Source of the DNA: Octopus bimaculoides
Taxonomy: Eukaryota
Length of the DNA: 61,684 nucleotides
Assembly: GCF_001194135.2 (NCBI RefSeq)
Contig: NC_069001.1
Location: forward strand, 37,788,616-37,850,299
Reading direction: 5' to 3'
A model generated the notes under the pieces. That model was not told the DNA's origin. It ran no database searches and saw only the letters and a program-made list of their open reading frames with translations. Shown here piece after piece: positions 2,765 through 42,279 of the stretch. A program made the translations under genes and the position numbers. The first letter of the stretch is position 1. Each line of letters opens with the position of its first letter.

Positions 2765-3254
2765 TCTTGTTTCTCTCTCACCACAATAAATATAAAAGTT
2801 CTTCTTCCCTTTATTTATATATTTTATTCCTATTTCTTCGGCTATATTTCTATCAACTGTGATTTTTGTCAATATTTGAAGATGCTGCAAATTCCTTTGT
2901 AAATCAGCTTTAATTTCGATATCAAATCATTATAACACAAATTCCAGTCTGTGAATTGGAGAGCATTTTGTATAAAATTTCTGTTCAGAGCCAATATTCC
3001 ACAGTAATTCTACATTAAGTGTATATAATGAGGGTTTATATCTGCTCTCTATGGCATCTTCCATTTGTCTTGAAAAGATGATGAATATTGAAGCATCTCA
3101 GGTACATAATATTCTTTTATACCAATGTCATCTGATATTCTGAAAGAAAAGAGAACAAAATAGAAAATATCGAGGATACTTAAACCAAAGACATTCAACG
3201 ATCGACATTTTACAACAATTCTTCTATAGTGAGAAATTGTAGATATAAACCTTT

Positions 3255-4400
3255 ACCATGATGTGCAAAGCAACCAGCATTCAGGCAAGAAAGGCCATGG
3301 AGGCCTGTGGAGTTGAGGGGCCTGCCACGACAGATCAAACCTGTGCTTATGTCAGCTCCCAGTCTGAGGGCAATGGAGACACGAAGTTCATCCAGGCTGA
3401 GTAGACAACCACCATTAACCACAGGGATGGCATCAATCCAGTTACTTGTGTATTTGGCACTAGCAGACAGTAAGTGGCACCTTGAAAACTGGTCAAACTG
3501 GATGAAGAGGGAATCCGAGGTGGCCTTCGAAATTATGTTGTCCCAAGCTCTCTGACTCCGACAGTCCTCCACCTTCTCAAGAGCAGACAAGCCCAATTCC
3601 CTCCAGTGTTGGAGAGCTTCATCCAAGTCGATGTTGGAGATGACAGAATGTTGCTCACCAGGTTGGAGCAGGTGTGGGTGGAGGAAAGGAAGCAGGGGAG
3701 AGAGAGGGATGAGCACATACAAAGACCAAGACCTCCAAATTGCTTGGGCAATGCAGCCTGTTTGCCGGACATTGAAGAGAGTCTGACATTGACTAAGCAT
3801 TCGAGGCTCTCAAACATTGAGTTGTCAAAGCGTTGGAGGCACAATGGGAATCGGTAAGATGAACTGACTCTGAGTAAATATAAAAGCTTAGGGATTGAGA
3901 GGTAATTCCTAGGTATGAAAAATCCTTGATGGGGTTCGATAGCTTCAATATTTTTCAACAATTGCTCAAGGGCAGCCAGTGATTGGGGCTCCTAGAGAGC
4001 ACCAAGCTGATGGGGGAGGAGCTGAAATGGAAGGGAAGGACTCTGCAAAAAGATCAATAATTGGTTGATGTTGAGAAGCTGGGTGGTTGAGGATCCAGAG
4101 CTCACATTTGGAGCTGTTTACTTGGAGACTCCAGTGACCAAGCACCCCAATCATCATGTTTGCAACAGCATGAACCCTGTCTGGAGGTCTCCACAAATAA
4201 GCATCGTTGAAATGCCAGACATTGAGGTCTAGGCCCCCCCCCCCAGTTATGTTATTAATGCTCAGTGTGAAAAGAGCAGGGGGCCTGAATGGATCACCCA
4301 GTTGGACTCTTGAGTTAGAGATGATGATTTGATCACCTAATTGCGAGATTCCTGTCTTCACTCGTAACTCACCTTGCAGAGGTCATTAGTGAAGTTCGTC
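3255..4400 (-). mobile_element. Decayed CRE-clade-like non-LTR retrotransposon (RT plus C-terminal region) in the ZNF-1 intron
   Basis: Frameshifted pieces read RVQLGDPF (QQGDPL motif), WHFND (YLDD motif), QAALPKQFGGLGL and WIDAIP..LSLDELRVSIALRLG..GLHGLSCLNAG, typical of RLE-encoding CRE-like elements. Confidence 0.75.
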
Positions 4401-9459: not shown

Positions 9460-9954
9460 CTCCTCAACTAAACATAGAGGTATTAATGCATATTGAAAAC
9501 TAGCTCGTTATCAACATTGAAGTGGTATATGCAGGATATGATGTGTGTTATGTTTTTTCTGATGCTCAAATGAATTTTCCCAATGTTGTCAATTTCTTCC
9601 ATCTAATAATTTTCTAAATACTTCCTGCTTTAAATGTTATTATGGATGTATCCCACCAAGGGACCAATTCTGATGTTGGTTTTCATTTCTACAGTTTTAT
9701 CATTTCTTTTATTTCTAGTATGATTCCTTCATGACTTGAGGGTTAAACTGAATGTCTATTTGCAAGTATGAATGAAACCTTAAACTTGATATAAATGCAA
9801 AATGAATGACGTAATTTCTGAATCATCATCATAGTCATCAGTGTTTTAATGTCCATTCTACAGGCTGGTATGGGTTTGATATGTCTGTTACACAAGATGT
9901 CAGCACATTTTCTCAATTGTGAGGCCCAGGATCTTGGGTTCTGACCTCGTTATT

Positions 9955-11990: not shown

Positions 11991-13439
11991 GTGTGCAGGT
12001 ATGTGTATGTATGTATATGATCGACCTAAAATTGGAGATCATCTTAATTATCATGATTATTTTTACGTCAAATGGAAATAATTATAAGCACACCAATGCA
12101 AGGATGGTACTAATTATTTAAGCGGTGAAAAGAAATAATAGGTACCTTCCTCACGGTGCTCAGTGTTATTATTCCTAATAAAAACGCAAAACCTGAAATA
12201 TTAGGGAAGGTCATTATTGGATCATACCGACTCCAGCNNNNNNNNNNNNNNNNNNNNNNNNNNNNNNNNNNNNNNNNNNNNNNNNNNNNNNNNNNNNNNN
12301 NNNNNNNNNNNNNNNNNNNNNNNNNNNNNNNNNNNNNNNNNNNNNNNNNNNNNNNNNNNNNNNNNNNNNNNNNNNNNNNNNNNNNNNNNNNNNNNNNNNN
12401 NNNNNNNNNNNNNNNNNNNNNNNNNNNNNNNNNNNNNNNNNNNNNNNNNNNNNNNNNNNNNNNNNNNNNNNNNNNNNNNNNNNNNNNNNNNNNNNNNNNN
12501 NNNNNNNNNNNNNNNNNNNNNNNNNNNNNNNNNNNNNNNNNNNNNNNNNNNNNNNNNNNNNNNNNNNNNNNNNNNNNNNNNNNNNNNNNNNNNNNNNNNN
12601 NNNNNNNNNNNNNNNNNNNNNNNNNNNNNNNNNNNNNNNNNNNNNNNNNNNNNNNNNNNNNNNNNNNNNNNNNNNNNNNNNNNNNNNNNNNNNNNNNNNN
12701 NNNNNNNNNNNNNNNNNNNNNNNNNNNNNNNNNNNNNNNNNNNNNNNNNNNNNNNNNNNNNNNNNNNNNNNNNNNNNNNNNNNNNNNNNNNNNNNNNNNN
12801 NNNNNNNNNNNNNNNNNNGATGTTGATACTCAAAGATCGATGATAATTATCGATAGTCCAGCTGATAATTACAGCGAACAAAATTGATTCCCAATTAAAA
12901 AAAAAAAGCTATTAAAATTGCTAATAAAACTTTCCCCAAACTTCTGTTTGAAGTACTAAGCTGTTCCATTCCAATATATTTTAGTGTTTTATTCACAAAC
13001 AGCAAATCCTGTAATCTCTATGGGACAGTTGTAGATTCCTCGTGGATAAAGATACAATCTATTATGATATACGAGAAACAAGCAACAGAAATGTCATGTG
13101 AAACACTAACAAATTGACTAAACATCAACTTTTTACATTGATTCTTGTTTTTATTTGTGATTTCGTATTTGTTTTCTCAGACTTTGATATTATATTTACT
13201 TTGTGTTACGTTGATTTCCTTTTGAGGAAGTGAAGGATGTCTTCGCAACTTGGGTATTCAGTACGATTATCTACATTCTCCACTGGGCAAAGAAAAATCG
13301 GTGTTACTATAGTATGATATCCACCTTGCTTGTTGCACCTATCGTAAGGCACTCTACCAAACAACCCATTGACGGCCTTCAGCCCTTAATTCCAGCCCAT
13401 TTAGTTGTTCACACTAGCACCATGCTAGCCAGAGACTTT

Positions 13440-24474: not shown

Positions 24475-26040
24475 CCAAATAAATATTTCTTCTGCTAGAT
24501 TTCCATCAACTGTGATCTTTGTTGATATTTGAAGATGTTGCAAAGTCTTTTGTTATCCAATTTTAATTACAATATAAATTCATCTTCCATTCATTTCAGA
24601 GTGAAACAGGGGAATTTCGCTGTTAATCTCAGTTCACAGCAAATATTTCACAGTAATTCTACAACAGACTTAAACAAACAGGATTAAGTCTGTTCTACAT
24701 AATTTATTTTCGGTCTCCAAGCAACGAATTCAAGTAAGTAATTCTTTTATGCCAATGCCACTTGATGTTCTGAAATAGAAGAGAATGAAACAGAATATAG
24801 AGGATACATAAAATGAAGACATTCAACAGTGGACATGTTACTACATTTCTTCTATATTGATAAACGGTAGATGGAAACGTTTACCTGAAGAAGGGAACTC
24901 GTCTAATATAGCCATTACTTTTTAAGACATAAATACATACACACACACACACGTACCCTTTTTCTGAAGATACGATCCAGTAGGGCGAGGAGTTTTGTTC
25001 TTTTAAAGAAAATTAGACGCGTTTCAGAAGGGAATGACAAAGCATAACGAAAAAAAACAAAACTAAAACAAATCATATTATTGGCGGTTGTCTGTTAATA
25101 GACATGGTGGGAGGAGGGGGAACTGACGTTTGAAATACAGAATATAACAAAACAAAACAAAAAACACCGAAAGATGAGAAAAATCTCGACGAAAACAGAG
25201 CCAGCAAATCGGAAAGTCCGTCCAAAACCTGCGGAGTGAGACATGAGGGAGATTTAGGATTAAAAGACGGTGAAGGTTGGATCGCTTTCAAAAACAAACT
25301 GGGTGGGCATGATTGGGACGTTTTAAAATGACATGATGGTCGTGTTCGGAAAGCTTCGAAAGACAGAAGGGGCGACACACCTTTACAAAAACGTGTTTGC
25401 GAACGTCCGCTAGCAGACATGTGCACAAGCTTCATCAAACATAAATCAGAAAAATTATTTTCCAAGACTACACTTTTGCGTAATTATTCTGTGTAATTCT
25501 TGGAGTATTCTTAGATTTTACATAGAAATCAGAAAGTAAAACAGTGAAAATATTAAGACAACACTATGAAACGTCAGTTAAAGCAAGTTTTTTAACTCAC
25601 TTCTATTACATATGATAAGAGCAACTTTAGTAAAATACCTTCTCTTCTTCATTTCTTTTATCTTTGAACACATCAAAACAAATAGATGTAGCAGAAAAAA
25701 GGAGACATTATAAATGTTGATACTATTAATGATACTTACAAATTAATTAGAGAAGCAAAGGCGAAGATGTCACAACTCAAGACTGGAACAAGGACAGCTT
25801 CAACACTTTCTACATTTGACAACAAACTCTCATTTAGATTTTGACATAAAGAATGTTGTAGCTATTTCTTTCCACAGTTAATTAGCAATCATCTCTAATT
25901 AACTGGATTACCTAAATATCAATACTAAACTACATCTGACCCCGAAATAACAACAAAATTTCGATCAAGTCTCTCCAAGTTGTTGGTGAAATTTAAATTA
26001 GAGTCACTCATACTACTTCCGGTTGTAGTCTTCCGGTTAT
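24475..26040 (-). other. 5' part of a minus-strand ZNF unit truncated by the gap
   Basis: Exon-1 homology at about 25740-25900 with a donor at 25739. Acceptor and exon-2 start at about 24780 down to 24475 (reverse reads ..LQHLQISTKITVDGNLAEEIF, the paralogous leader). No fingers are visible before the gap. Confidence 0.7.
26015..26036 (-). promoter_or_regulatory. Tandem ETS-type motifs (CCGGAAGT, CCGGAAG) between the minus-strand ZNF unit and the Tigger element
   Basis: ACTTCCGG at 26015-26022 and CTTCCGG at 26030-26036. The same motif occurs in ZNF promoter regions at 23686, 52107, 58185 and 58415. Confidence 0.55.
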
Positions 26041-26080
26041 CATAAGTATGGAAATCCATACGTATCCACGCTAATTAATA

Positions 26081-28625
26081 CTTGCAACCTCGTTCATCAC
26101 TGACTCATTCAACACTGATCCTGGATAACACGGCACGCTCAATTGTAAACCGTGTTATGTTTATCAAGGATCGATTTGTGAAAACACAGGTCAGGGATCT
26201 GTCGAAGATTCTGCTGGCATCGCAAAAAAACAAAAAACAACGACACCCTTCCCCTCCAGCAACCATCCCTCTAATGTTCAGCTACCCAGAATGCACTGAT
26301 TATCACTTGTGTTTACACGACCGTGTTGTGAGGCTGCGTATTTTTTAATACGGATCTATATACTTGAACCTATGAAGATGGGACCAACGAAGAGAAATAA
26401 TACGAAAGCACCCGATCTGAACAAACGACGTAGACGTGTGTATTCCTTACAGGAAAAAGTAGAGATGATCAAGAAAATATACGACGGTGCAAGCTTCGCT
26501 GGTGTGGGCCGCGAGTTTGGTGTTAATGAATCTACCATTCGTTCCATTTACAAAGTGCGTGGAGATATAATGAACGCATTCACGGATGCTGCCCCTAGAT
26601 CAGTGAATCGAATAGTCAGAGTACATAAAGATGCTTTTATTCAGCCCATGGAAAAGGGGGTTTATTTGTGGATGCAGGATTGTTACAGTAAGCGGCTTCC
26701 TGTATCAACAAAACGTATCCAGGATCGTGCCAAGCAAATATATAAGAGCTTGGTTGAGCTTAGTGATGTTGTTGATAAGGACAAATATACTTTTCAAGGT
26801 AGCCGTGGTTGGGTACAGAAATTCATTAAACGATATAATTTAGCCAGCAAACTTGTGCCAGGTGATGCAACATCAGATGATACAGAGACTACTCGGCGTT
26901 ATCTGGAAGAATTTTATAAAATGATGAATGAGGGTGGATATTTACCGTGTCAAGTTTTTAATGCAGTTGAAACAGCCCTTTATTGGAAAAAGATGCCCGA
27001 AAAAAGTTACGTAGCCAAAGAGGAGGCCAGGACGACAGGGTTTAAAGATGCTAAAGACCGTGTGTCTCTGTTGTTCTGTTGTAACGGCTCTGGTGATTTC
27101 AAAGCTAAACCACTGCTTATCCATCATTCTGCCCGGCCTAGTCCTTTCCAGAACATTAGCATGTTAACTCTCCCTGTGCACTGGCGTGCTAATAAAAATG
27201 GGTGGATGACTAAAGTGATTTTTGAAGAATGGTTTATGACCCACTTCCGCGCTGAAGTGAAAGAATACTGTGCCAGAAAGAATATTTCTTTTAAAGCAAT
27301 TCTTGTGTTAGACAATTGTCCTGGCTATTCTACAAACTTAAATGACCTTCAAAATGAAATCAAAGTGATTTATCTACCGCCTAACACCCGGACATTGCTG
27401 CAACCTATGAACCAAGAAGTGATGGCCACATTTAAGCTTCTCTATCTTGACCTTACCTTTGAGAATATACACAAGGCACTGGTGGACGATGAGGAACTAA
27501 CTGTTCGGCAATATTTGAAACGATTCAACATTCTACACGGTGTCCGCTTCATTGGCAAGGCTTGGCAAGCTGTAAATCAAGGATGTCTTTTGAATGGATG
27601 GCGCAACTTATTGCCTGACACAACTCCAGACTTCGTTGGGTTTGAAGAGGATAACATGACTCGAGTTCTGAACATGGCAAAAGCATTACCTGGGGATGGT
27701 TTTCAAGAACTCGATGAAACCGACATTTGGGATATGATGGAAGCTCCCGAACGAGAATTAAATGATACAGAGGTGTTGGAATTAGTCGACGAAAGACAAA
27801 ACGACATAGGTACAGAGGACGATGACTGTGTAGAGTCTAGTCCAACATTAACCATGTCAAACCTAAAAAAAATAATGTCCTACTATGAGCAGTTGACTCA
27901 ACTCATACAGGAAGCAGATCCAAGTTTTGAGAGAAAAGAATCTGTAACTGCCATTCTAGATCGTGGCATTGCACCCTACAAGGAAATTTATAGGGAACGA
28001 CAGGCATTAAATAAGCAGTCGATGATAACTCCTCTCTTTGGCAGTTTTTCTGATTCTCCAGCACCGCAAAAAGAGGAACCAGTAGCCAGCCGTTATGGGG
28101 CTCNNNNNNNNNNTCTCCAGCACCGCAAAAAGAGGAACCAGTAGCCAGCCGTTATGGGGCTCTCACCATTAGGTCTTCTACACCTCGTATCCAAGTCAAT
28201 AACATTGACTCTGACTCTAAACCAGACTTCTCGGGCATTCTCTCTCTACCACAATCAGCTCCAACAAATAACAATGACAACACAGAAGATGTAGATAAGA
28301 TGTAGATGTAGCTCCGATCCTCCTACATTACACTAACTCAGTGGAATCCGTAAGTGTTATATTTTTCACGGTTACATTTTCCTTTTGTGATTAAACTTTA
28401 CTGTTTTATTCCAACCATGAAACAAAATTATTGTCTATGTTTAAAGACTGTTTGGAGGTGTTATTTGAGTAAGTTCTGTATACAGTTTGGAGTCTCGGAA
28501 CGAANNNNNNNNNNAGGTGTTATTTGAGTAAGTTCTGTATACAGTTTGGAGTCTCGGAACGAAAAACTATTTTCCCGATGTATTCTATTATTCATTTGTC
28601 ACCGATTCATTCAACACGTTTATCA
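26081..28625 (+). mobile_element. Tigger/pogo-family element, near full length
   Basis: Contains the transposase ORF. Candidate degenerate left TIR TA|CTTGCAACCTCG at 26079-26092; TCATTCAACAC occurs near both ends; the right end falls in the gap 28626-28700. Confidence 0.65.
26372..28305 (+). CDS. Tigger-derived (TIGD1/CENP-B-like) protein of ~624 aa with substituted catalytic residues
   Basis: N-terminal psq-type HTH (RRVYSLQEK..VGREFGVNESTIR), CENP-B/Tc5 HTH (FQGSRGWVQKFIKR) and DDE_1 domain. Collapsing the 48-bp duplicate across the 10-N gap (28104-28113) extends the frame to TAG at 28303-28305. Confidence 0.88.
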
Positions 28626-30533
28626 NNNNNNNNNNNNNNNNNNNNNNNNNNNNNNNNNNNNNNNNNNNNNNNNNNNNNNNNNNNNNNNNNNNNNNNNNNN
28701 GTCTTCCTTCCAAGAAAAGAATGATGGAAATAATTGTAGAAGTATAAACACCAATGTCAGGGAAAAAGCATTTTTTTTTTTTGAGGCAGCCAAAATAAAA
28801 GATTACTCTGTTTGGCGACGAGGACGGTTGTAACAATGAGGAAGAATTACTAAATCTACGTCTTTTAGAAGATAAAATATATGAAAGAGACCCGGATATA
28901 TTTAAAGACTTAGGTTGAATCTAGAGAGAGTTAGTCATTCTGAGAGTTTCTGATTATAATTCTGTTGATTCCCTCTTATTGTTTTATAAACACCTTTATT
29001 ACACGGTCAGATCTTGTTTACAATTCACAATAAGGTGATAAATTAAGAGATGATTGTTGCTAATTAACTGTGGTAAGAAATAGCAACGAACATTCTGGAT
29101 TATGTTAATGTGAAAGTACAAGTTTGCAGTCCTGTAAATTTTTGAACTATTGGCAACTTTTTCCTTCCTAAAACTTTTTCAAAGCCTCTGATTCCACCTA
29201 ATATCAGGGCGGAGTGATTTAGTTCCGGGTACTATTTTGACGCAAGGAACTATATTACTATAAGCAACTATTTAATGATGACACCGCTTCATCTTCATTA
29301 ATGACACAAATCTTCGGATCGGGGTTCCATCCAAACTCTGTTTATTATTGTTGTCGTGATTGCGGGGCAACGTGCAGTTTACTGTAATATTTCTCGTTTT
29401 AAATCATTTTAAACTTAATTCTTTAATAAGAGACAAACCTTTAAAGAAAATCTGTACAGATACATCTCTCACCCCTTATTTCTCTATTTCTGATTGTCCA
29501 CAATACCCCAGTCGTGTTACCGTCCCTTGGGGAAGATATTGATATAAAGGAAGGTTTGTTGTAAAATATAGAAGCTGTCATTGTCCNNNNNNNNNNATTG
29601 ATATAAAGGAAGGTTTGTTGTAAAATATAGAAGCTGTCATTGTCCATTCCGAGTTGTGACTACTTGAATCTATCGTGACATCTTCTTCATCGGCTCTGTA
29701 TTAATATGTAAGTATTATTAACAGAAACAACATCCTCTACANNNNNNNNNNNNNNNNNNNNNNNNNNNNNNNNNNNNNNNNNNNNNNNNNNNNNNNNNNN
29801 NNCTACTTCATCTGTTTGTTTTAATGTGTTCAAAGATAAAGGAAGGAAAATGAAGAAGAGAAGAACTTTTCCTAAAGTAACGATGCTGTCTTAATCCCCA
29901 TTCGGGTTGGCCGTCACATATCTAGTACGGTGAACTGAAAAACTTGCTTTAGCTGACATCACCTATTGTTGTGTGAATACTTTGTTTTCCTTTCCACTCA
30001 CCATTTCAATTATCGTTATTCCCCAATATCTTAATGTTAACTCAAAGAGAAAGTATTTCTTCAGGTGAATATACTGTTTAGTCACCATTTACCAACATCG
30101 GGCCTACTTTCTTCTGTACAGGGTATTGTAGATCCATGACTTACGTTAAAACGTTGACATTTCCTGTTTTTCGTTTATTTCCACGGCAATATTTTCTATA
30201 ATTTATACTGTTTCTCTTGTTTCAGAATATCATACGACATGGCGACGAAAATGCCTACCACCACCACTCAAGCATCTACATCATCTTTTAACGACAAATT
30301 GAAATTGTGATGAAGAGCAGATAAATGCCTCTTTTTATTACTGGAGTAATTAATTACTAATAACAGAGATTATCTGTCAGATTTTCCTACTTTTACCGTA
30401 CAAGATGATTTATATATTTTGATTAAACTTGGATTAGACAGGAGTTTGTGGTAACTTCAAATCTCAACAAGGGTCACAGTTGAGGGAAATATAGCAGAAG
30501 AAATATTTGTTAAGAATATAAAACCCAAACTAA

Positions 30534-31773
<1,240 letters not shown>

Positions 31774-32100
31774 AATTTGTGGTCAATTATTCTTTGACAA
31801 TGGTGACTTAACTACTGACAAATGTTTTAACTCTGGAGAGAAGCCCTACCTCTGTGACATATGTGGTAAATTGTTCTCTCAAAATACTCACTTATGTAGC
31901 TATGTATATATTTATGCAGCACAATGACTTCATGAGTGGCTTAATGTGGCTTGCAGTGAATAAATTTCAATACATGGAATACTTGATTTTTGATGAGCAA
32001 ATTAATGTTTGTGGTAAATCCTTCTCTCAGAAAGGTAACCTCATGACTCACAAACACACTCATACAGCAGATAAACCATACCTGTGATACCTGTGGTAAG
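31774..32100 (+). pseudogene. Degenerate finger remnants 3' of the ZNF-5 stop
   Basis: cactaaaatttgtggt corresponds to a damaged cactgtgaaatttgtggt. Further broken tgtgacatatgtggtaaa and tgtggtaaatccttctctcagaaagg motifs follow. Confidence 0.75.
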
Positions 32101-33759
32101 TTTTTCATTAGGTTCATAAATTTCTGAGTATTGGTACTTTCAGATGCTCAGAAAATTACTCTAATAACCAACAACAAAAAAAAAAGACTAATTTGTTCAA
32201 TGAAATTGTTTAAAACCAATTGCTGCCTTCTATTTTCTACAAACATAAAAAAATCATCGAATGGAAATATCCTATGTGACAAGTGTATTCAACCATGAAA
32301 GAAACTCTAACATTGTAGGTGTATTGGTGTACTTTTGTATACTGATTATGGAAATGAAAATCATTTTTGCCATAAATTAATAAATGAAAAGTTAATAGCT
32401 TTTAAAGTTTGCAAATTTTAGGTAATTTTAACCAATTGAAAACTACATTCATTGGCGTATTTATTACATTGGGGCGTTGGTGTGGCAACACTGTGAAGGG
32501 GCACCCCACAGTGGTGCCACATCAAATGCTATGACATTAGTCTCATTACCTTTTTTACAGACCTTGTATGTGGTGCAGGAGATATGAAAATTTTAATTTA
32601 TTTCACAAACTCCACATTTGAATTTTTGCTACAAAATATGTATTGTCTTCCTGAACTGAACTACAGTTTGTGTTTTTGTAATTTAATGTTCAGTTTCTAT
32701 TTTTGGTAAATTTTCATTAAAAAAAAAACAATAAAAAATTCATAACAGTTCCAACTTTACCCATGACTTTATTCATTAAAACTTCCATCATTGAATGTTT
32801 TGTCATCTTGCATAAAATGCTAGCTTCTAAATCCTGTTTTCTGATTGACTTAAAATAATCAAACTTTAAACATCTGAATAAGAATATTGGATTCAGCATG
32901 AAGAATTACATCCATATACCAAATTTTTAAAGTTTCATGTAATTTTAAATTTTCGAAAAGTGTAAGCCAAACAGAAAACATCTGAGATACATTCTAAAGG
33001 TAAGTGGTCATCTGTCAGGATATAAAAAGGACAGAGTAGCAAAGAGATATGAATTGAGACGGAGAGAGAGTCGTACAAGTTCTACTGATGTATCATTGAG
33101 AAAAAGAAAGAAAAATTGGAGTGCAAAAGAGGCTAAATCGAAGAGAGAAAGTAATGTGTATGAAATTGTGAATAAAGTAATATAAAGTGCATTACGTAAT
33201 CATTGTATTCCAATTTCTTTCACTTTGCAATGTGTAGCAGAGGAGCGAGTATCTTTTCATACAGACACGATGCAGGCTACACTTTCAGATTTAAAACTGA
33301 AGATCTTCTTCATTGCATTCCTTGCTTGTTTTTAGGTAATAATAATAACAGAATTATAACGCACCAGTGTTAGAATGGTAGTAATTATTTCATTGGCGTA
33401 AAGTAGGAACCTCCCTCAAATTGGTCAGTGTTAATATTATTTGTAATAAAAATGTAAAACCAGAAATATTAGACAAGTGATTTCATCACTTTACTGCAAC
33501 TCAATTCTATCCATTCAGGAAAAACAGATGCTGCTGTTCTAGCTTTGGGAGGGATGCTATCATGACAAGGAAGTTCCAGTGGCTTTCTATTTATGGTTCC
33601 TTTCAAAGATAGACAAACGTCGAGAAAGAAATCTGTGCAGTCATAGAATGTTGAAGCAAATAGTGCCACCTAATACACACTTCTCATTACTGCAACATCG
33701 TTACTGATCAACGCACAGTAGCAATTATCTTCAATAAAAATGGTATGTGGAAATTGAAA

Positions 33760-36239: not shown

Positions 36240-36586
36240 ATACCCTTCTTTTATTTCAGGTAATTTTGAAAATATGCAAAGACTTAGTGAAACAATTGTG
36301 ACAATATTAGTCTGGGGTTTGGAACATAAATTAACATGAAATTTTGGTGGAAAGTTTCAATTTAGANNNNNNNNNNNNNNNNNNNNNNNNNNNNNNNNNN
36401 NNNNNNNNNNNNNNNNNNNNNNNNNNNNNNNNNNNNNNNNNNNNNNNNNNNNNNNNNNNNNNNNNNTTTGGAACATAAATTAACATGAAATTTTGGTGGA
36501 AAGTTTCAATTTAGATCATTTTAAAGCAGTAAATTTATATCATAGAACCAGGGGCAGTTTTGGGCAGATTTGTGTGAAAAGGGTTA
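36240..36586. repeat. Non-autonomous DNA element end with a piggyBac-like terminus
   Basis: Ends ..gtgtgaaaaGGG|TTAA; interrupted by an N-gap with duplicated flanks. The other end was not identified. Confidence 0.35.
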
Positions 36587-41219: not shown

Positions 41220-42279
41220 CAACATGGACAAAAAGCAAATTTGCACAATTTTCTTATTCCAGTTCAAGCTAGGCTGTAAAGCTGATGAAACAGCTCACGA
41301 TATCAACAATGTGTTTGGCCCAGGAACCAATGATGAACGTACAGCACAATAAAGTTTCAAGAAATTCCATTGTGATGACGTGAGTCTTGAAGATGATAAG
41401 CATAGTGGTCAGCCATTGGATGTTGACAACAATCAACTAAGAGCCTTAGTGGAAGTCAATCCACGCACAACTGTTCGAGAGCTTGCTTCTGAATTAGACA
41501 TAACGTATACGACAATTTCCAACCACTTGAAAGAGATTGGAAAAACAAAAATACTTGGGAAATGGGTGCCGCACAAATTGAATGACAACCAAAAAAAAAC
41601 GCTGTTTTGAAGTGTCGTCTTTCCTTCTTTTACGCATCAAAAACGACCTGTTTCTCAACCAGATTGTGACTTACGATGGAAAGTGGATTCTTTACAATAA
41701 TCGGCGATGCTCGTCTCAGTGGTTGGACGCTGACAAAGTTCCACGGCATTTCCTGAAGCCAAAGTTGTACCAAAAGAAGGTCATCCATCACTGCTTTTTG
41801 GATCCAGGCGAAACTATTACAGCGGAGAACTACTGTCAAAAAATTGATGAATTGCATAAGAAACTCCGACAACAACAGCCAGCATTAGTCAATAGAAAAG
41901 GACCAATTCTTCTCCACGACAACATTCAGCCGCATGTCGCACAACTGACCCCGCAGAAGTTGAACGAATTTGGCTACAAAACTCTGCCATACTCACCAGA
42001 CCTCTCGCCTACCGACTACCACTTTTTCAAGCATCTCAACGACTTTCTGCATGAGAAATGCTTCAAAAACCAAGATGATGCCAAACACGCCTCCAACAAC
42101 TTCATCGCTACCAGAACACAGGAGTTTTACGATACTGGCATAAATAAACTTGTTTCACGTTGGCAACAGTGTGTTGATTCTGATGGTGTTTATTTCGATT
42201 AATAAAATTTTCTTTGAGCCGAGATATGTGCATCTGAATTTAAAGGTTAAAAACTGCAAGAACTTTCTTGACAACCTAA
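41220..42279 (+). mobile_element. Decayed mariner (Hsmar1-like) transposon, 5' end missing
   Basis: WVPHKL, IVTYDGKWILY, LLHDN and YSPDLSPTDY motifs with a stop and a frameshift; 3' TIR ..AACTTTCTTGACAACCTAA|TA. Confidence 0.9.

Follow-up and report, generated by a model that had tools for sequence, protein, structure and literature searches.

A Tigger transposase gene that is probably kept as a host gene in octopods is spliced onto an adjoining C2H2 zinc-finger gene

Introduction

Is an intact Tigger transposase reading frame in an octopus zinc-finger cluster a relic of a recent insertion, or is it a gene that the host keeps? The question is raised by a locus in a 61,684-nt stretch of Octopus bimaculoides contig NC_069001.1 (positions 37,788,616 to 37,850,299 of the forward strand), which we call the window and in whose coordinates all positions are given. 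A preliminary description of the window noted a Tigger open reading frame (ORF) with substituted catalytic residues among C2H2 zinc-finger (ZNF) genes, and proposed that it is a domesticated gene of the CENP-B/TIGD kind that may work alongside the ZNF repertoire, which is greatly expanded in octopus. In vertebrates and yeast there are well-documented cases of domesticated pogo/Tigger transposases (CENP-B, JRK, TIGDs, POGZ); to our knowledge, most domestication claims outside these groups rest on catalogue-level domain counts. The evidence below leads us to believe that a Tigger (pogo-superfamily) transposase gene very probably became fixed in an Octopus ancestor and has since been kept as an ordinary single-copy host gene.

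The gene itself is already known, from NCBI annotation and from a catalogue that lists XP_014768235/LOC106867769 as a transposable element (TE)-derived 'HTH-PSQ' transcription factor of O. bimaculoides and mentions pogo domestication in the Octopus lineage (Mukherjee & Moroz 2023, PMC10027918). The passages of this paper that were searched, and its table entry for the protein, hold no analysis of the triad, selection, synteny, copy number or transcript, and the 2023 catalogue was the only report found in the literature on octopus Tigger domestication or a Tigger-ZNF bicistronic gene. What is new here is the fixation across octopods of V199 and N347 at two catalytic positions, the evidence of selection and synteny, the conserved splice onto a ZNF gene, and a lone relative in a lobster.

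Results

The reading frame is open once an assembly artefact is removed

The Tigger-derived ORF is a single frame of 624 codons that the reference assembly interrupts.

26372..28305, plus strand: Tigger-derived ORF, 624 codons and TAG after removal of 28104-28162; 100% identity to XP_014768235.1
28104..28162, no strand: assembly artefact, 10 N and a second copy of 49 nt, absent from the real molecule (RNA and DNA joins)

An exact 49-nt duplicate (28055-28103 = 28114-28162) lies on both sides of 10 N at 28104-28113. RNA contigs of three runs and DNA contigs of three further runs join 28054 directly to 28114, skipping 59 nt, and because both kinds of contig read through the gap we conclude that it is an assembly artefact. 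With the 59 nt removed, 1875 nt form 624 sense codons from the ATG at 26372 and the TAG at 28303-28305, in agreement with the preliminary description, which had reported about 624 codons without stops or true frameshifts. The encoded protein is XP_014768235.1 ("tigger transposable element-derived protein 1-like", Octopus bimaculoides), with 100% identity, and a self-comparison of the window found the ORF to be unique within it. The second ATG, at 26378, is probably the start codon that is conserved, because in a fourth octopod (see below) the first ATG is replaced by ATA and the newer NCBI model begins MGPTK.

The artefact is one of several. DNA contigs bridge a second one (28455 to 28515) and also the 75-N gap at 28626-28700, the real content of which is about 53 nt. 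With this second artefact included, the same 49-nt-duplicate signature, typical of an un-merged contig overlap next to a run of N, is found at three gaps besides the first (28505-28514, 29587-29596 and 36367-36466). Such gap artefacts are still present in the v2 chromosome-level assembly (GCA_001194135.2), and ORF or repeat calls across them in O. bimaculoides need the duplicate and the N run to be taken out.

The protein keeps the Tigger domains and has non-acidic residues at two triad positions

The domain order and the catalytic positions of the protein were mapped with Pfam and with an alignment of homologues.

26423..26569 (aa 18-66), plus strand: CENP-B_N helix-turn-helix (HTH); Pfam PF04218, 8e-9; dN/dS 0.04-0.15; pLDDT 80-90
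26648..26851 (aa 93-160), plus strand: HTH_Tnp_Tc5, second DNA-binding domain; Pfam PF03221, 6e-12; dN/dS 0.04-0.18
26966..26968, plus strand: triad position 1, Val199 (GTT), consensus Asp; same codon in 5/5 octopod copies
27053..27601 (aa 228-410), plus strand: DDE_1, RNase-H-like, former catalytic domain; Pfam PF03184, 4e-40, profile 1-177/177
27311..27313, plus strand: triad position 2, Asp314 (GAC), kept (homologue alignment)
27410..27412, plus strand: triad position 3, Asn347 (AAC), consensus Asp; same codon in 5/5 octopod copies

All three Pfam domains exceed the gathering score and follow the order of pogo/Tigger transposases, CENP-B_N, HTH_Tnp_Tc5 and DDE_1, and the closest named relatives of the protein are of Tigger type. 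Both HTH domains are kept, as had been claimed from the sequence. In an alignment with 13 Tigger-type homologues the consensus at the catalytic positions is FNADET / LDN / QPMDQ, and the octopus protein reads FNAVET / LDN / QPMNQ. The alignment recovered the V/D/N triad at the same three codons as the preliminary description, with positions 1 and 3 non-acidic and a spacing of 32 residues between D314 and N347, inside the Tigger range of DD29-36D (PMC7386202). The loss of D1 to V199 and of D3 to N347 predates the divergence of the sampled octopods.

An AlphaFold model of the protein has a mean pLDDT of 73.5, rising to about 90 where the domains are folded. In this model V199 is part of beta-1 of the RNase-H-like sheet, D314 comes directly after a later strand and N347 directly before a long helix; these are the canonical triad sites of the fold. 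A Foldseek search against the PDB returned the catalytic domains of Mos1, Metnase/SETMAR and Sleeping Beauty and, for the N-terminus, the DNA-binding domain of CENP-B (1hlv). The C-terminal helices (aa 495-551) are conserved, with pLDDT of about 87-92.

The gene is single-copy in O. bimaculoides and lies at the same place in three Octopus species

In DNA contigs of three O. bimaculoides runs, the ORF body was at single-copy k-mer depth, for example 73 versus 63-70 in unique flanks. The interval 24475-30822 of the window is collinear with the O. sinensis locus (L004, 8172-14215) and with an O. vulgaris locus (L006), and the gene order ZNF(-) / Tigger(+) / ZNF(+) is common to the three. The 90% protein cluster holds O. 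sinensis XP_029649311.1 and two O. vulgaris proteins, and the fourth octopod has an intact copy with 89% identity (two Logan contigs, runs SRR11869390/1; a 2.2-kb contig). Synteny had been proposed as a test across cephalopods: it stood for O. sinensis and O. vulgaris, and the conservation that we can show is within octopods only.

The second O. vulgaris copy (L005) lies 20 Mb away on the same chromosome as L006. The two loci are collinear over about 8.0-14.7 kb of the locus (about 6.6 kb, spanning both ZNF starts) and again in a block at about 19.5-20.9 kb. Because the collinearity runs through both flanking ZNF starts, we conclude that the paralogue arose by segmental duplication and not by transposition. 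It is the sole extra copy found: the three DNA runs were single-copy, and there were no dispersed full-length copies.

There was also no sign of terminal inverted repeats (TIRs). In the loci of O. sinensis and O. vulgaris, which are free of gaps, neither a seed-8 repeat search nor Smith-Waterman alignment against shuffles found inverted termini around the ORF above shuffle level. The preliminary description had left room for a right TIR in the gap at 28626-28700; the gap is now bridged and the gap-free orthologues have no TIR. The hallmarks of an active transposon, an intact triad, TIRs and copy number, are all absent from the locus.

The Tigger-derived gene does stand at the centre of a 1.4-kb imperfect inverted repeat (24500-25893 versus 29052-30489, 78-89%). 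We considered the arms as long TIRs and rejected them, because they are the upstream regions and first exons of head-to-head C2H2 ZNF paralogues. Other ZNF genes of the window carry the arm sequences too.

Purifying selection on the ORF

Comparison of the coding sequences indicates that the ORF is under purifying selection. We calculated dN/dS (omega) by the Nei-Gojobori method among five octopod copies (O. bimaculoides, O. sinensis, two of O. vulgaris and the fourth octopod). All five have open frames of 624-630 codons, and the length differences are all multiples of 3. Between O. bimaculoides and O. sinensis, dS was 0.14 and dN/dS 0.175 (Fisher p 2e-15); between O. bimaculoides and the fourth octopod, dS was 0.28 and dN/dS 0.205 (Fisher p 1e-22); and for the O. 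vulgaris paralogue pair dN/dS was 0.26 (Fisher p 5e-7). The overall range of 0.18-0.26 is well below 1, the value around which the preliminary description had placed a recent defective insertion. The neutral expectation on the path to the fourth octopod (L001) was about 23 stops, and the probability of none was about 8e-11. O. bimaculoides and O. sinensis share 95.3% identity in the coding sequence, compared to 88% in the 5' flank and 80% in the 3' flank.

Constraint was tightest in the two HTH domains (omega 0.04-0.18) and loosest in the C-terminal third, where omega was 0.25-0.4 for pairs of species and 0.20 for the O. vulgaris paralogue pair. In DDE_1, omega was 0.15-0.25 between species; the value of 0.81 between the O. 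vulgaris paralogues comes from just 3 synonymous and 9 non-synonymous changes. Because the copies are positionally orthologous or segmental duplicates, we conclude that it was a host locus fixed in place, and not a lineage of transposing copies, that came under this constraint.

The Tigger exon is spliced onto the right-hand ZNF gene

The sequence is present in 14 RNA-type runs from five studies, and spliced RNA was found in several independent studies, which answers the question of expression that the preliminary description had raised.

26282..28349, plus strand: exon 1, 5' untranslated region (UTR), whole Tigger ORF and 44 nt 3' to the donor (RNA contigs; start approximate, 26282-26318)
28350..30225, plus strand: intron GT..AG, holding two assembly gaps and one more 49-nt-duplicate artefact (RNA contigs, raw reads)
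30226..32700, plus strand: exon 2, C2H2 ZNF ORF and 3' UTR, end approximate (RNA contigs contiguous over 30226-30676; further pieces to about 32700)

RNA contigs of three runs (X1, X2, X5) start at 26282-26318, span the full ORF and all depart from the genome sequence at 28349, where the genome reads GTAAGT. The contigs continue instead with AATATCATACGACATGGCG, located at 30226 directly after a TTTCAG acceptor. The junction 28349 to 30226 (GT..AG) is found in contigs of these three runs and in raw reads of two more (X20, X22). Read depth is gone just past the donor, and this is the sole supported junction into 30226. Exon 2 continues unbroken into the C2H2 array of the right-hand ZNF gene, the ORF of which runs from the ATG at 30567 to the stop at 31771-31773 and is intact save for the assembly gap at 30823-30922. 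Its O. sinensis orthologue is a 336-aa protein with 10-11 fingers, and the ORF is intact in every species compared. Because the Tigger exon is spliced onto ZNF exon 2, the Tigger ORF precedes the ZNF ORF in the mature mRNA: two ORFs on one molecule, with no in-frame fusion.

The splice is conserved. The donor context CAGTGGAATCC followed by GTAAGT is identical in 4/4 other octopod sequences, the acceptor is kept in O. sinensis and in both O. vulgaris loci, and the O. vulgaris model CAI9738317.1 crosses the same junction (...TLTQWNP joined to ISYDMATK). The distance from the stop codon to the junction is 42-44 nt in all octopod sequences (44 nt in O. bimaculoides).

A short ORF, MATKMPTTTTQASTSSFNDKLKL followed by a stop, lies at 30239-30310, 13 nt into exon 2 and upstream of the ZNF start at 30567. 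Conservation of this stretch in O. sinensis and O. vulgaris is about 93-95%, with small indels that shift its frame, and the short ORF may affect how the ZNF ORF is translated.

Two nucleotide differences were seen in the Tigger exon. The changes 27671 A>G (N434D) and 27547 C>T (synonymous) are in RNA contigs of three studies (X1, X2, X5) and absent from 3/3 DNA contig sets (X26, X29, X30); two raw RNA reads of X20 have the genomic A at 27671. The difference at 27671 could be A-to-I recoding or merely a haplotype.

Relatives outside octopods are few

We searched for homologues with word-indexed searches and with exhaustive HMMER over 1.84 billion representatives (50%), about 15 billion proteins in all. 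After the octopod cluster, the closest matches were a protein of the lobster Homarus americanus (64%, full length), one on a metagenome contig (46%) and a partial JGI protein (42%, half length). In the exhaustive search of the 50% representatives the next matches were 34-36% identical and none was above 42%, and among the roughly 15 billion proteins there was no relative above 46% in any other mollusc, arthropod or other animal. A profile search with a subfamily alignment of the octopus, lobster and metagenome proteins added one partial protein. The metagenome relative (P0004) has an intact DDD triad; therefore, active members of the lineage exist or existed.

The lobster gene is a single intact ORF of 642 codons with the same domain set. 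Compared to the octopus gene, synonymous divergence has reached saturation (dS about 1.7), with a dN of 0.25. In the lobster protein Ser (TCC) stands in place of D1 and is followed by Lys (FNASKT); D3 is kept. On contig JAHLQT010039062.1 (L003) a weak inverted repeat of 25 nt (76%), starting TACATGTAT, stands on either side of the ORF (9682-9706 / 12187-12211) and may be what is left of a TIR. Another Tigger-like remnant, unrelated and with 40% identity, is found on the minus strand at 2774-4175, 6 kb upstream of the lobster homologue. A further NCBI model (P0018) is a chimera of part of the Tigger ORF and a Harbinger-type DDE_Tnp_4 domain.

These relatives bear on whether the octopus gene is older than octopods. 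The lobster protein could be an orthologue, with the gene an old one of protostomes or an old horizontal transfer shared with decapods, and with the catalytic loss ancient. The full-length identity of the 642-aa lobster protein, its shared domains and its own loss of D1 speak for this, all else being far more distant. We think it unlikely because the D1 replacements differ (Val GTT versus Ser TCC) and the lobster keeps D3, which fits independent decay; the possible TIR remnant around the lobster ORF, the intact triad of the metagenome relative and the lack of any closer relative in other animals point the same way. Other possibilities are that an old horizontal transfer was followed by parallel decay, or that the lobster gene is a transposon copy that lingers there.

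Alternative roles of the Tigger exon

The splice onto the ZNF gene raises two other explanations. In one, the ZNF gene is the real gene and the Tigger ORF is kept as a long upstream leader or as a splicing or promoter module for it. The Tigger exon is indeed the only supported source of a junction into ZNF exon 2, and the intact ZNF ORF and the conserved donor and acceptor are as this explanation would have them. However, a role at the level of RNA predicts neither an excess of synonymous changes nor an omega of 0.04 in two DNA-binding domains, and it does not predict a 624-codon frame that stays open in five copies. As the reason for the conservation of the ORF it is very unlikely, and a leader role and a protein role are not mutually exclusive.

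In the other, the Tigger domains are translated in frame with the zinc fingers, as in POGZ/POGK-type fusions. The newer NCBI model XP_052831396.1 is such a Tigger-ZNF chimera, ending ...QKEEP and then 23 residues past the junction, and the transcript does run on into the ZNF exon. However, the donor of the model (GT at 28082) is inside the frame-breaking 49-nt duplicate, no RNA read or contig backs its junction, the real donor lies 44 nt past the in-frame TAG, and the gap-free O. sinensis sequence gives a plain 630-aa protein. We rejected the model as a workaround for the assembly artefact, and we regard an in-frame fusion as highly improbable.

That the ORF is a recent defective Tigger insertion which has not yet decayed, a neutral relic rather than a gene, has next to no probability left: the NCBI label 'tigger transposable element-derived protein 1-like' is also borne by multi-copy TE ORFs and short pieces of the 5' end of the gene are repeated in the genome, but this explanation is already refuted by synteny and selection, with the same collinear locus in three species at dS 0.14-0.28 and dN/dS of about 0.2, indels only in frame, a chance of no stop of 1e-5 to 1e-11, a single-copy ORF body and no TIRs.

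Repeated fragments probably trace the parent element

Short parts of the locus are repeated in the genome.

26273..26566, plus strand: two repeated stretches, about 26273-26347 and about 26433-26566; about 20-65 genome copies at at least 85% identity (DNA contig depth)
28592..28617, plus strand: 26-nt motif TCATTTGTCACCGATTCATTCAACAC, direct repeat of 26090-26115 in the 5' flank

When matched at 85% likeness, DNA contigs cover 26273-26347, at and near the transcript start, about 20-fold; over 26433-26566, the part that codes for CENP-B_N, the depth is as much as about 65-fold. Many contigs connect the two stretches, and 27-28 contigs depart from the locus exactly at 26566 and continue with sequence like the 3'-flank motif at 28586-28617. 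The 26-nt motif is conserved in O. sinensis and is repeated about 5-fold in the genome, with sharp edges. These stretches probably mark internally deleted relatives of the same Tigger lineage that resemble miniature inverted-repeat transposable elements (MITEs). The repeated 5' segments had no further copy in any of the loci compared by sensitive blastn, and a homologue search with the N-terminal 103 aa, aimed at repeated fragments coding for the HTH, gave no match.

Discussion

The Tigger-derived gene as a probable host gene

Copy number, synteny, dN/dS, expression and the right end of the element all favour the proposal of the preliminary description that this is a domesticated gene. By analogy, the protein would be a non-catalytic, sequence-specific DNA-binding factor of the TIGD/JRK/CENP-B type, and the behaviour of CENP-B, Abp1/Cbh, JRK/TIGD and SETMAR suggests a role as a transcriptional or chromatin factor. 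The dead RNase-H-like core and the C-terminal helical domains could serve as surfaces for interaction or oligomerisation. Likely targets would be sequences related to the ends of the parent transposon, of which MITE-like remnants appear to persist. The shared transcript would co-regulate the Tigger gene with the ZNF gene. With so few nucleotides between stop and junction, the mRNA would escape decay that depends on the exon-junction complex (EJC). The suggested cooperation with the ZNF repertoire may hold; so far it rests only on the transcript shared with the adjacent ZNF gene.

Several points weigh against this view. Conservation is demonstrated within octopods only (three named species and the fourth octopod), and no orthologue was found among the database proteins of squid, cuttlefish and Nautilus, the genomes of which were not searched directly. 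Translation of both ORFs is predicted from sequence, and DNA binding by the protein is predicted by analogy. The EJC argument, which bears on nonsense-mediated decay, relies on a 50-55-nt rule taken from mammals. The MITE-like relatives are deduced from contig depth and shared breakpoints, not from sequences. Finally, the triad reads as degenerate (V/D/N), and partial triads are no proof that all nuclease activity is gone.

Comparison with known domesticated transposases

Gao et al. 2020 (PMC7386202) recognise stationary domesticated pogo genes by a conserved distribution, a high identity and a Ka/Ks ratio under 1. In vertebrates, TIGD2/5/7, JRK and JRKL derive from a complete Tigger transposase, are stationary and usually lack introns in the coding part, and their Ka/Ks is about 0.06-0.2. 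Every gene retains the DDE fold, and from gene to gene the triad may be whole, reduced to a part or no longer recognisable; several Tigger-derived genes have a part-degenerate triad, with forms such as DD30N or DN35D listed (PMC7386202). Measured by the features used in that study, the octopus locus has a conserved position, Ka/Ks below 1 (p 5e-7 to 1e-22) and transcription, and its distribution in protein databases covers Octopus-like octopods and one lobster gene. It resembles TIGD2/5/7, JRK and JRKL in keeping CENP-B_N, HTH_Tnp_Tc5 and DDE_1 and in being stationary, and it differs in being an independent mollusc event without orthology to them, in having lost two triad residues and in having its mRNA spliced onto a ZNF gene. 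There was no orthology to vertebrate CENP-B, TIGD or JRK, the best non-self matches (34-36%) being generic Tigger-like proteins of many taxa.

CENP-B and fission-yeast Abp1/Cbh1/Cbh2 are derived from pogo elements, have chromatin or TE-silencing roles and have a non-functional triad. The octopus protein shares their paired N-terminal HTH module, and the N-terminus of its model matches 1hlv. It differs from CENP-B in that sequence similarity is too low for phmmer to report; CENP-B was not reached in a phmmer search of PDB sequences. In SETMAR, the Hsmar1 transposase domain is fused in frame to a SET domain, has partial nuclease activity (DDN) and has MiHsmar1/TIR binding sites. The likeness here is an immobilised transposase under selection, a similar catalytic fold and short non-autonomous relatives scattered as potential sites. 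The difference is that SETMAR is an in-frame fusion, and that in octopus the MITE-like relatives are inferred and binding is predicted. POGZ and POGK share with the octopus gene a pogo-type transposase coupled by splicing to a zinc-finger gene, and differ in that the octopus stop codon is ahead of the donor and the two ORFs are unfused. POGZ comes from the Passer family and not from Tigger (PMC7386202).

By the usual criteria of immobility, synteny, purifying selection, expression and triad loss, the locus is a clean invertebrate case. The splice onto a ZNF gene without in-frame fusion is an architecture intermediate between a free domesticated transposase and POGZ-like fusions, and offers a tractable system for how transposase genes become wired into host transcription units. 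It also lends itself to testing for joint action of cephalopod ZNF clusters and TE-derived DNA binders on transposon remnants.

A bolder reading is that the Tigger and C2H2 ZNF ORFs form a conserved operon-like unit, with both proteins made from one mRNA and acting together, that predates the split of O. bimaculoides and O. vulgaris and was duplicated as a unit in O. vulgaris. This we hold as doubtful. Such a two-ORF module could be an unfused precursor stage of POGZ-type genes, and it is possible that it acts on the scattered MITE-like remnants of the parent Tigger. A second and equally doubtful possibility is that the same rare Tigger lineage came into lobsters or survived in them and lost D1 there on its own; this would point to an old prey-predator horizontal transfer with parallel taming afterwards.

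Neighbouring features and minor observations

The left-hand ZNF gene starts about 270 nt from the start of the Tigger transcript and in divergent orientation, so the two share a divergent promoter region, 26015-26281.

25740..26014, minus strand: 5' exon of the left ZNF gene, spliced to 24769 (RNA contigs)

The remainder of the window consists of C2H2 ZNF genes and a truncated mariner fragment. At 41582-42202 (plus strand) a 206-aa ORF has only a partial match to the mariner domain Transposase_1 (9e-14) and is a truncated mariner remnant, consistent with the earlier observation that the other TE coding fragments in the window are decayed. A LINE remnant, an ORF of 278 aa with motifs like those of reverse transcriptases, follows closely downstream of the right-hand ZNF gene in O. 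sinensis (L004, 15928-16764, minus strand).

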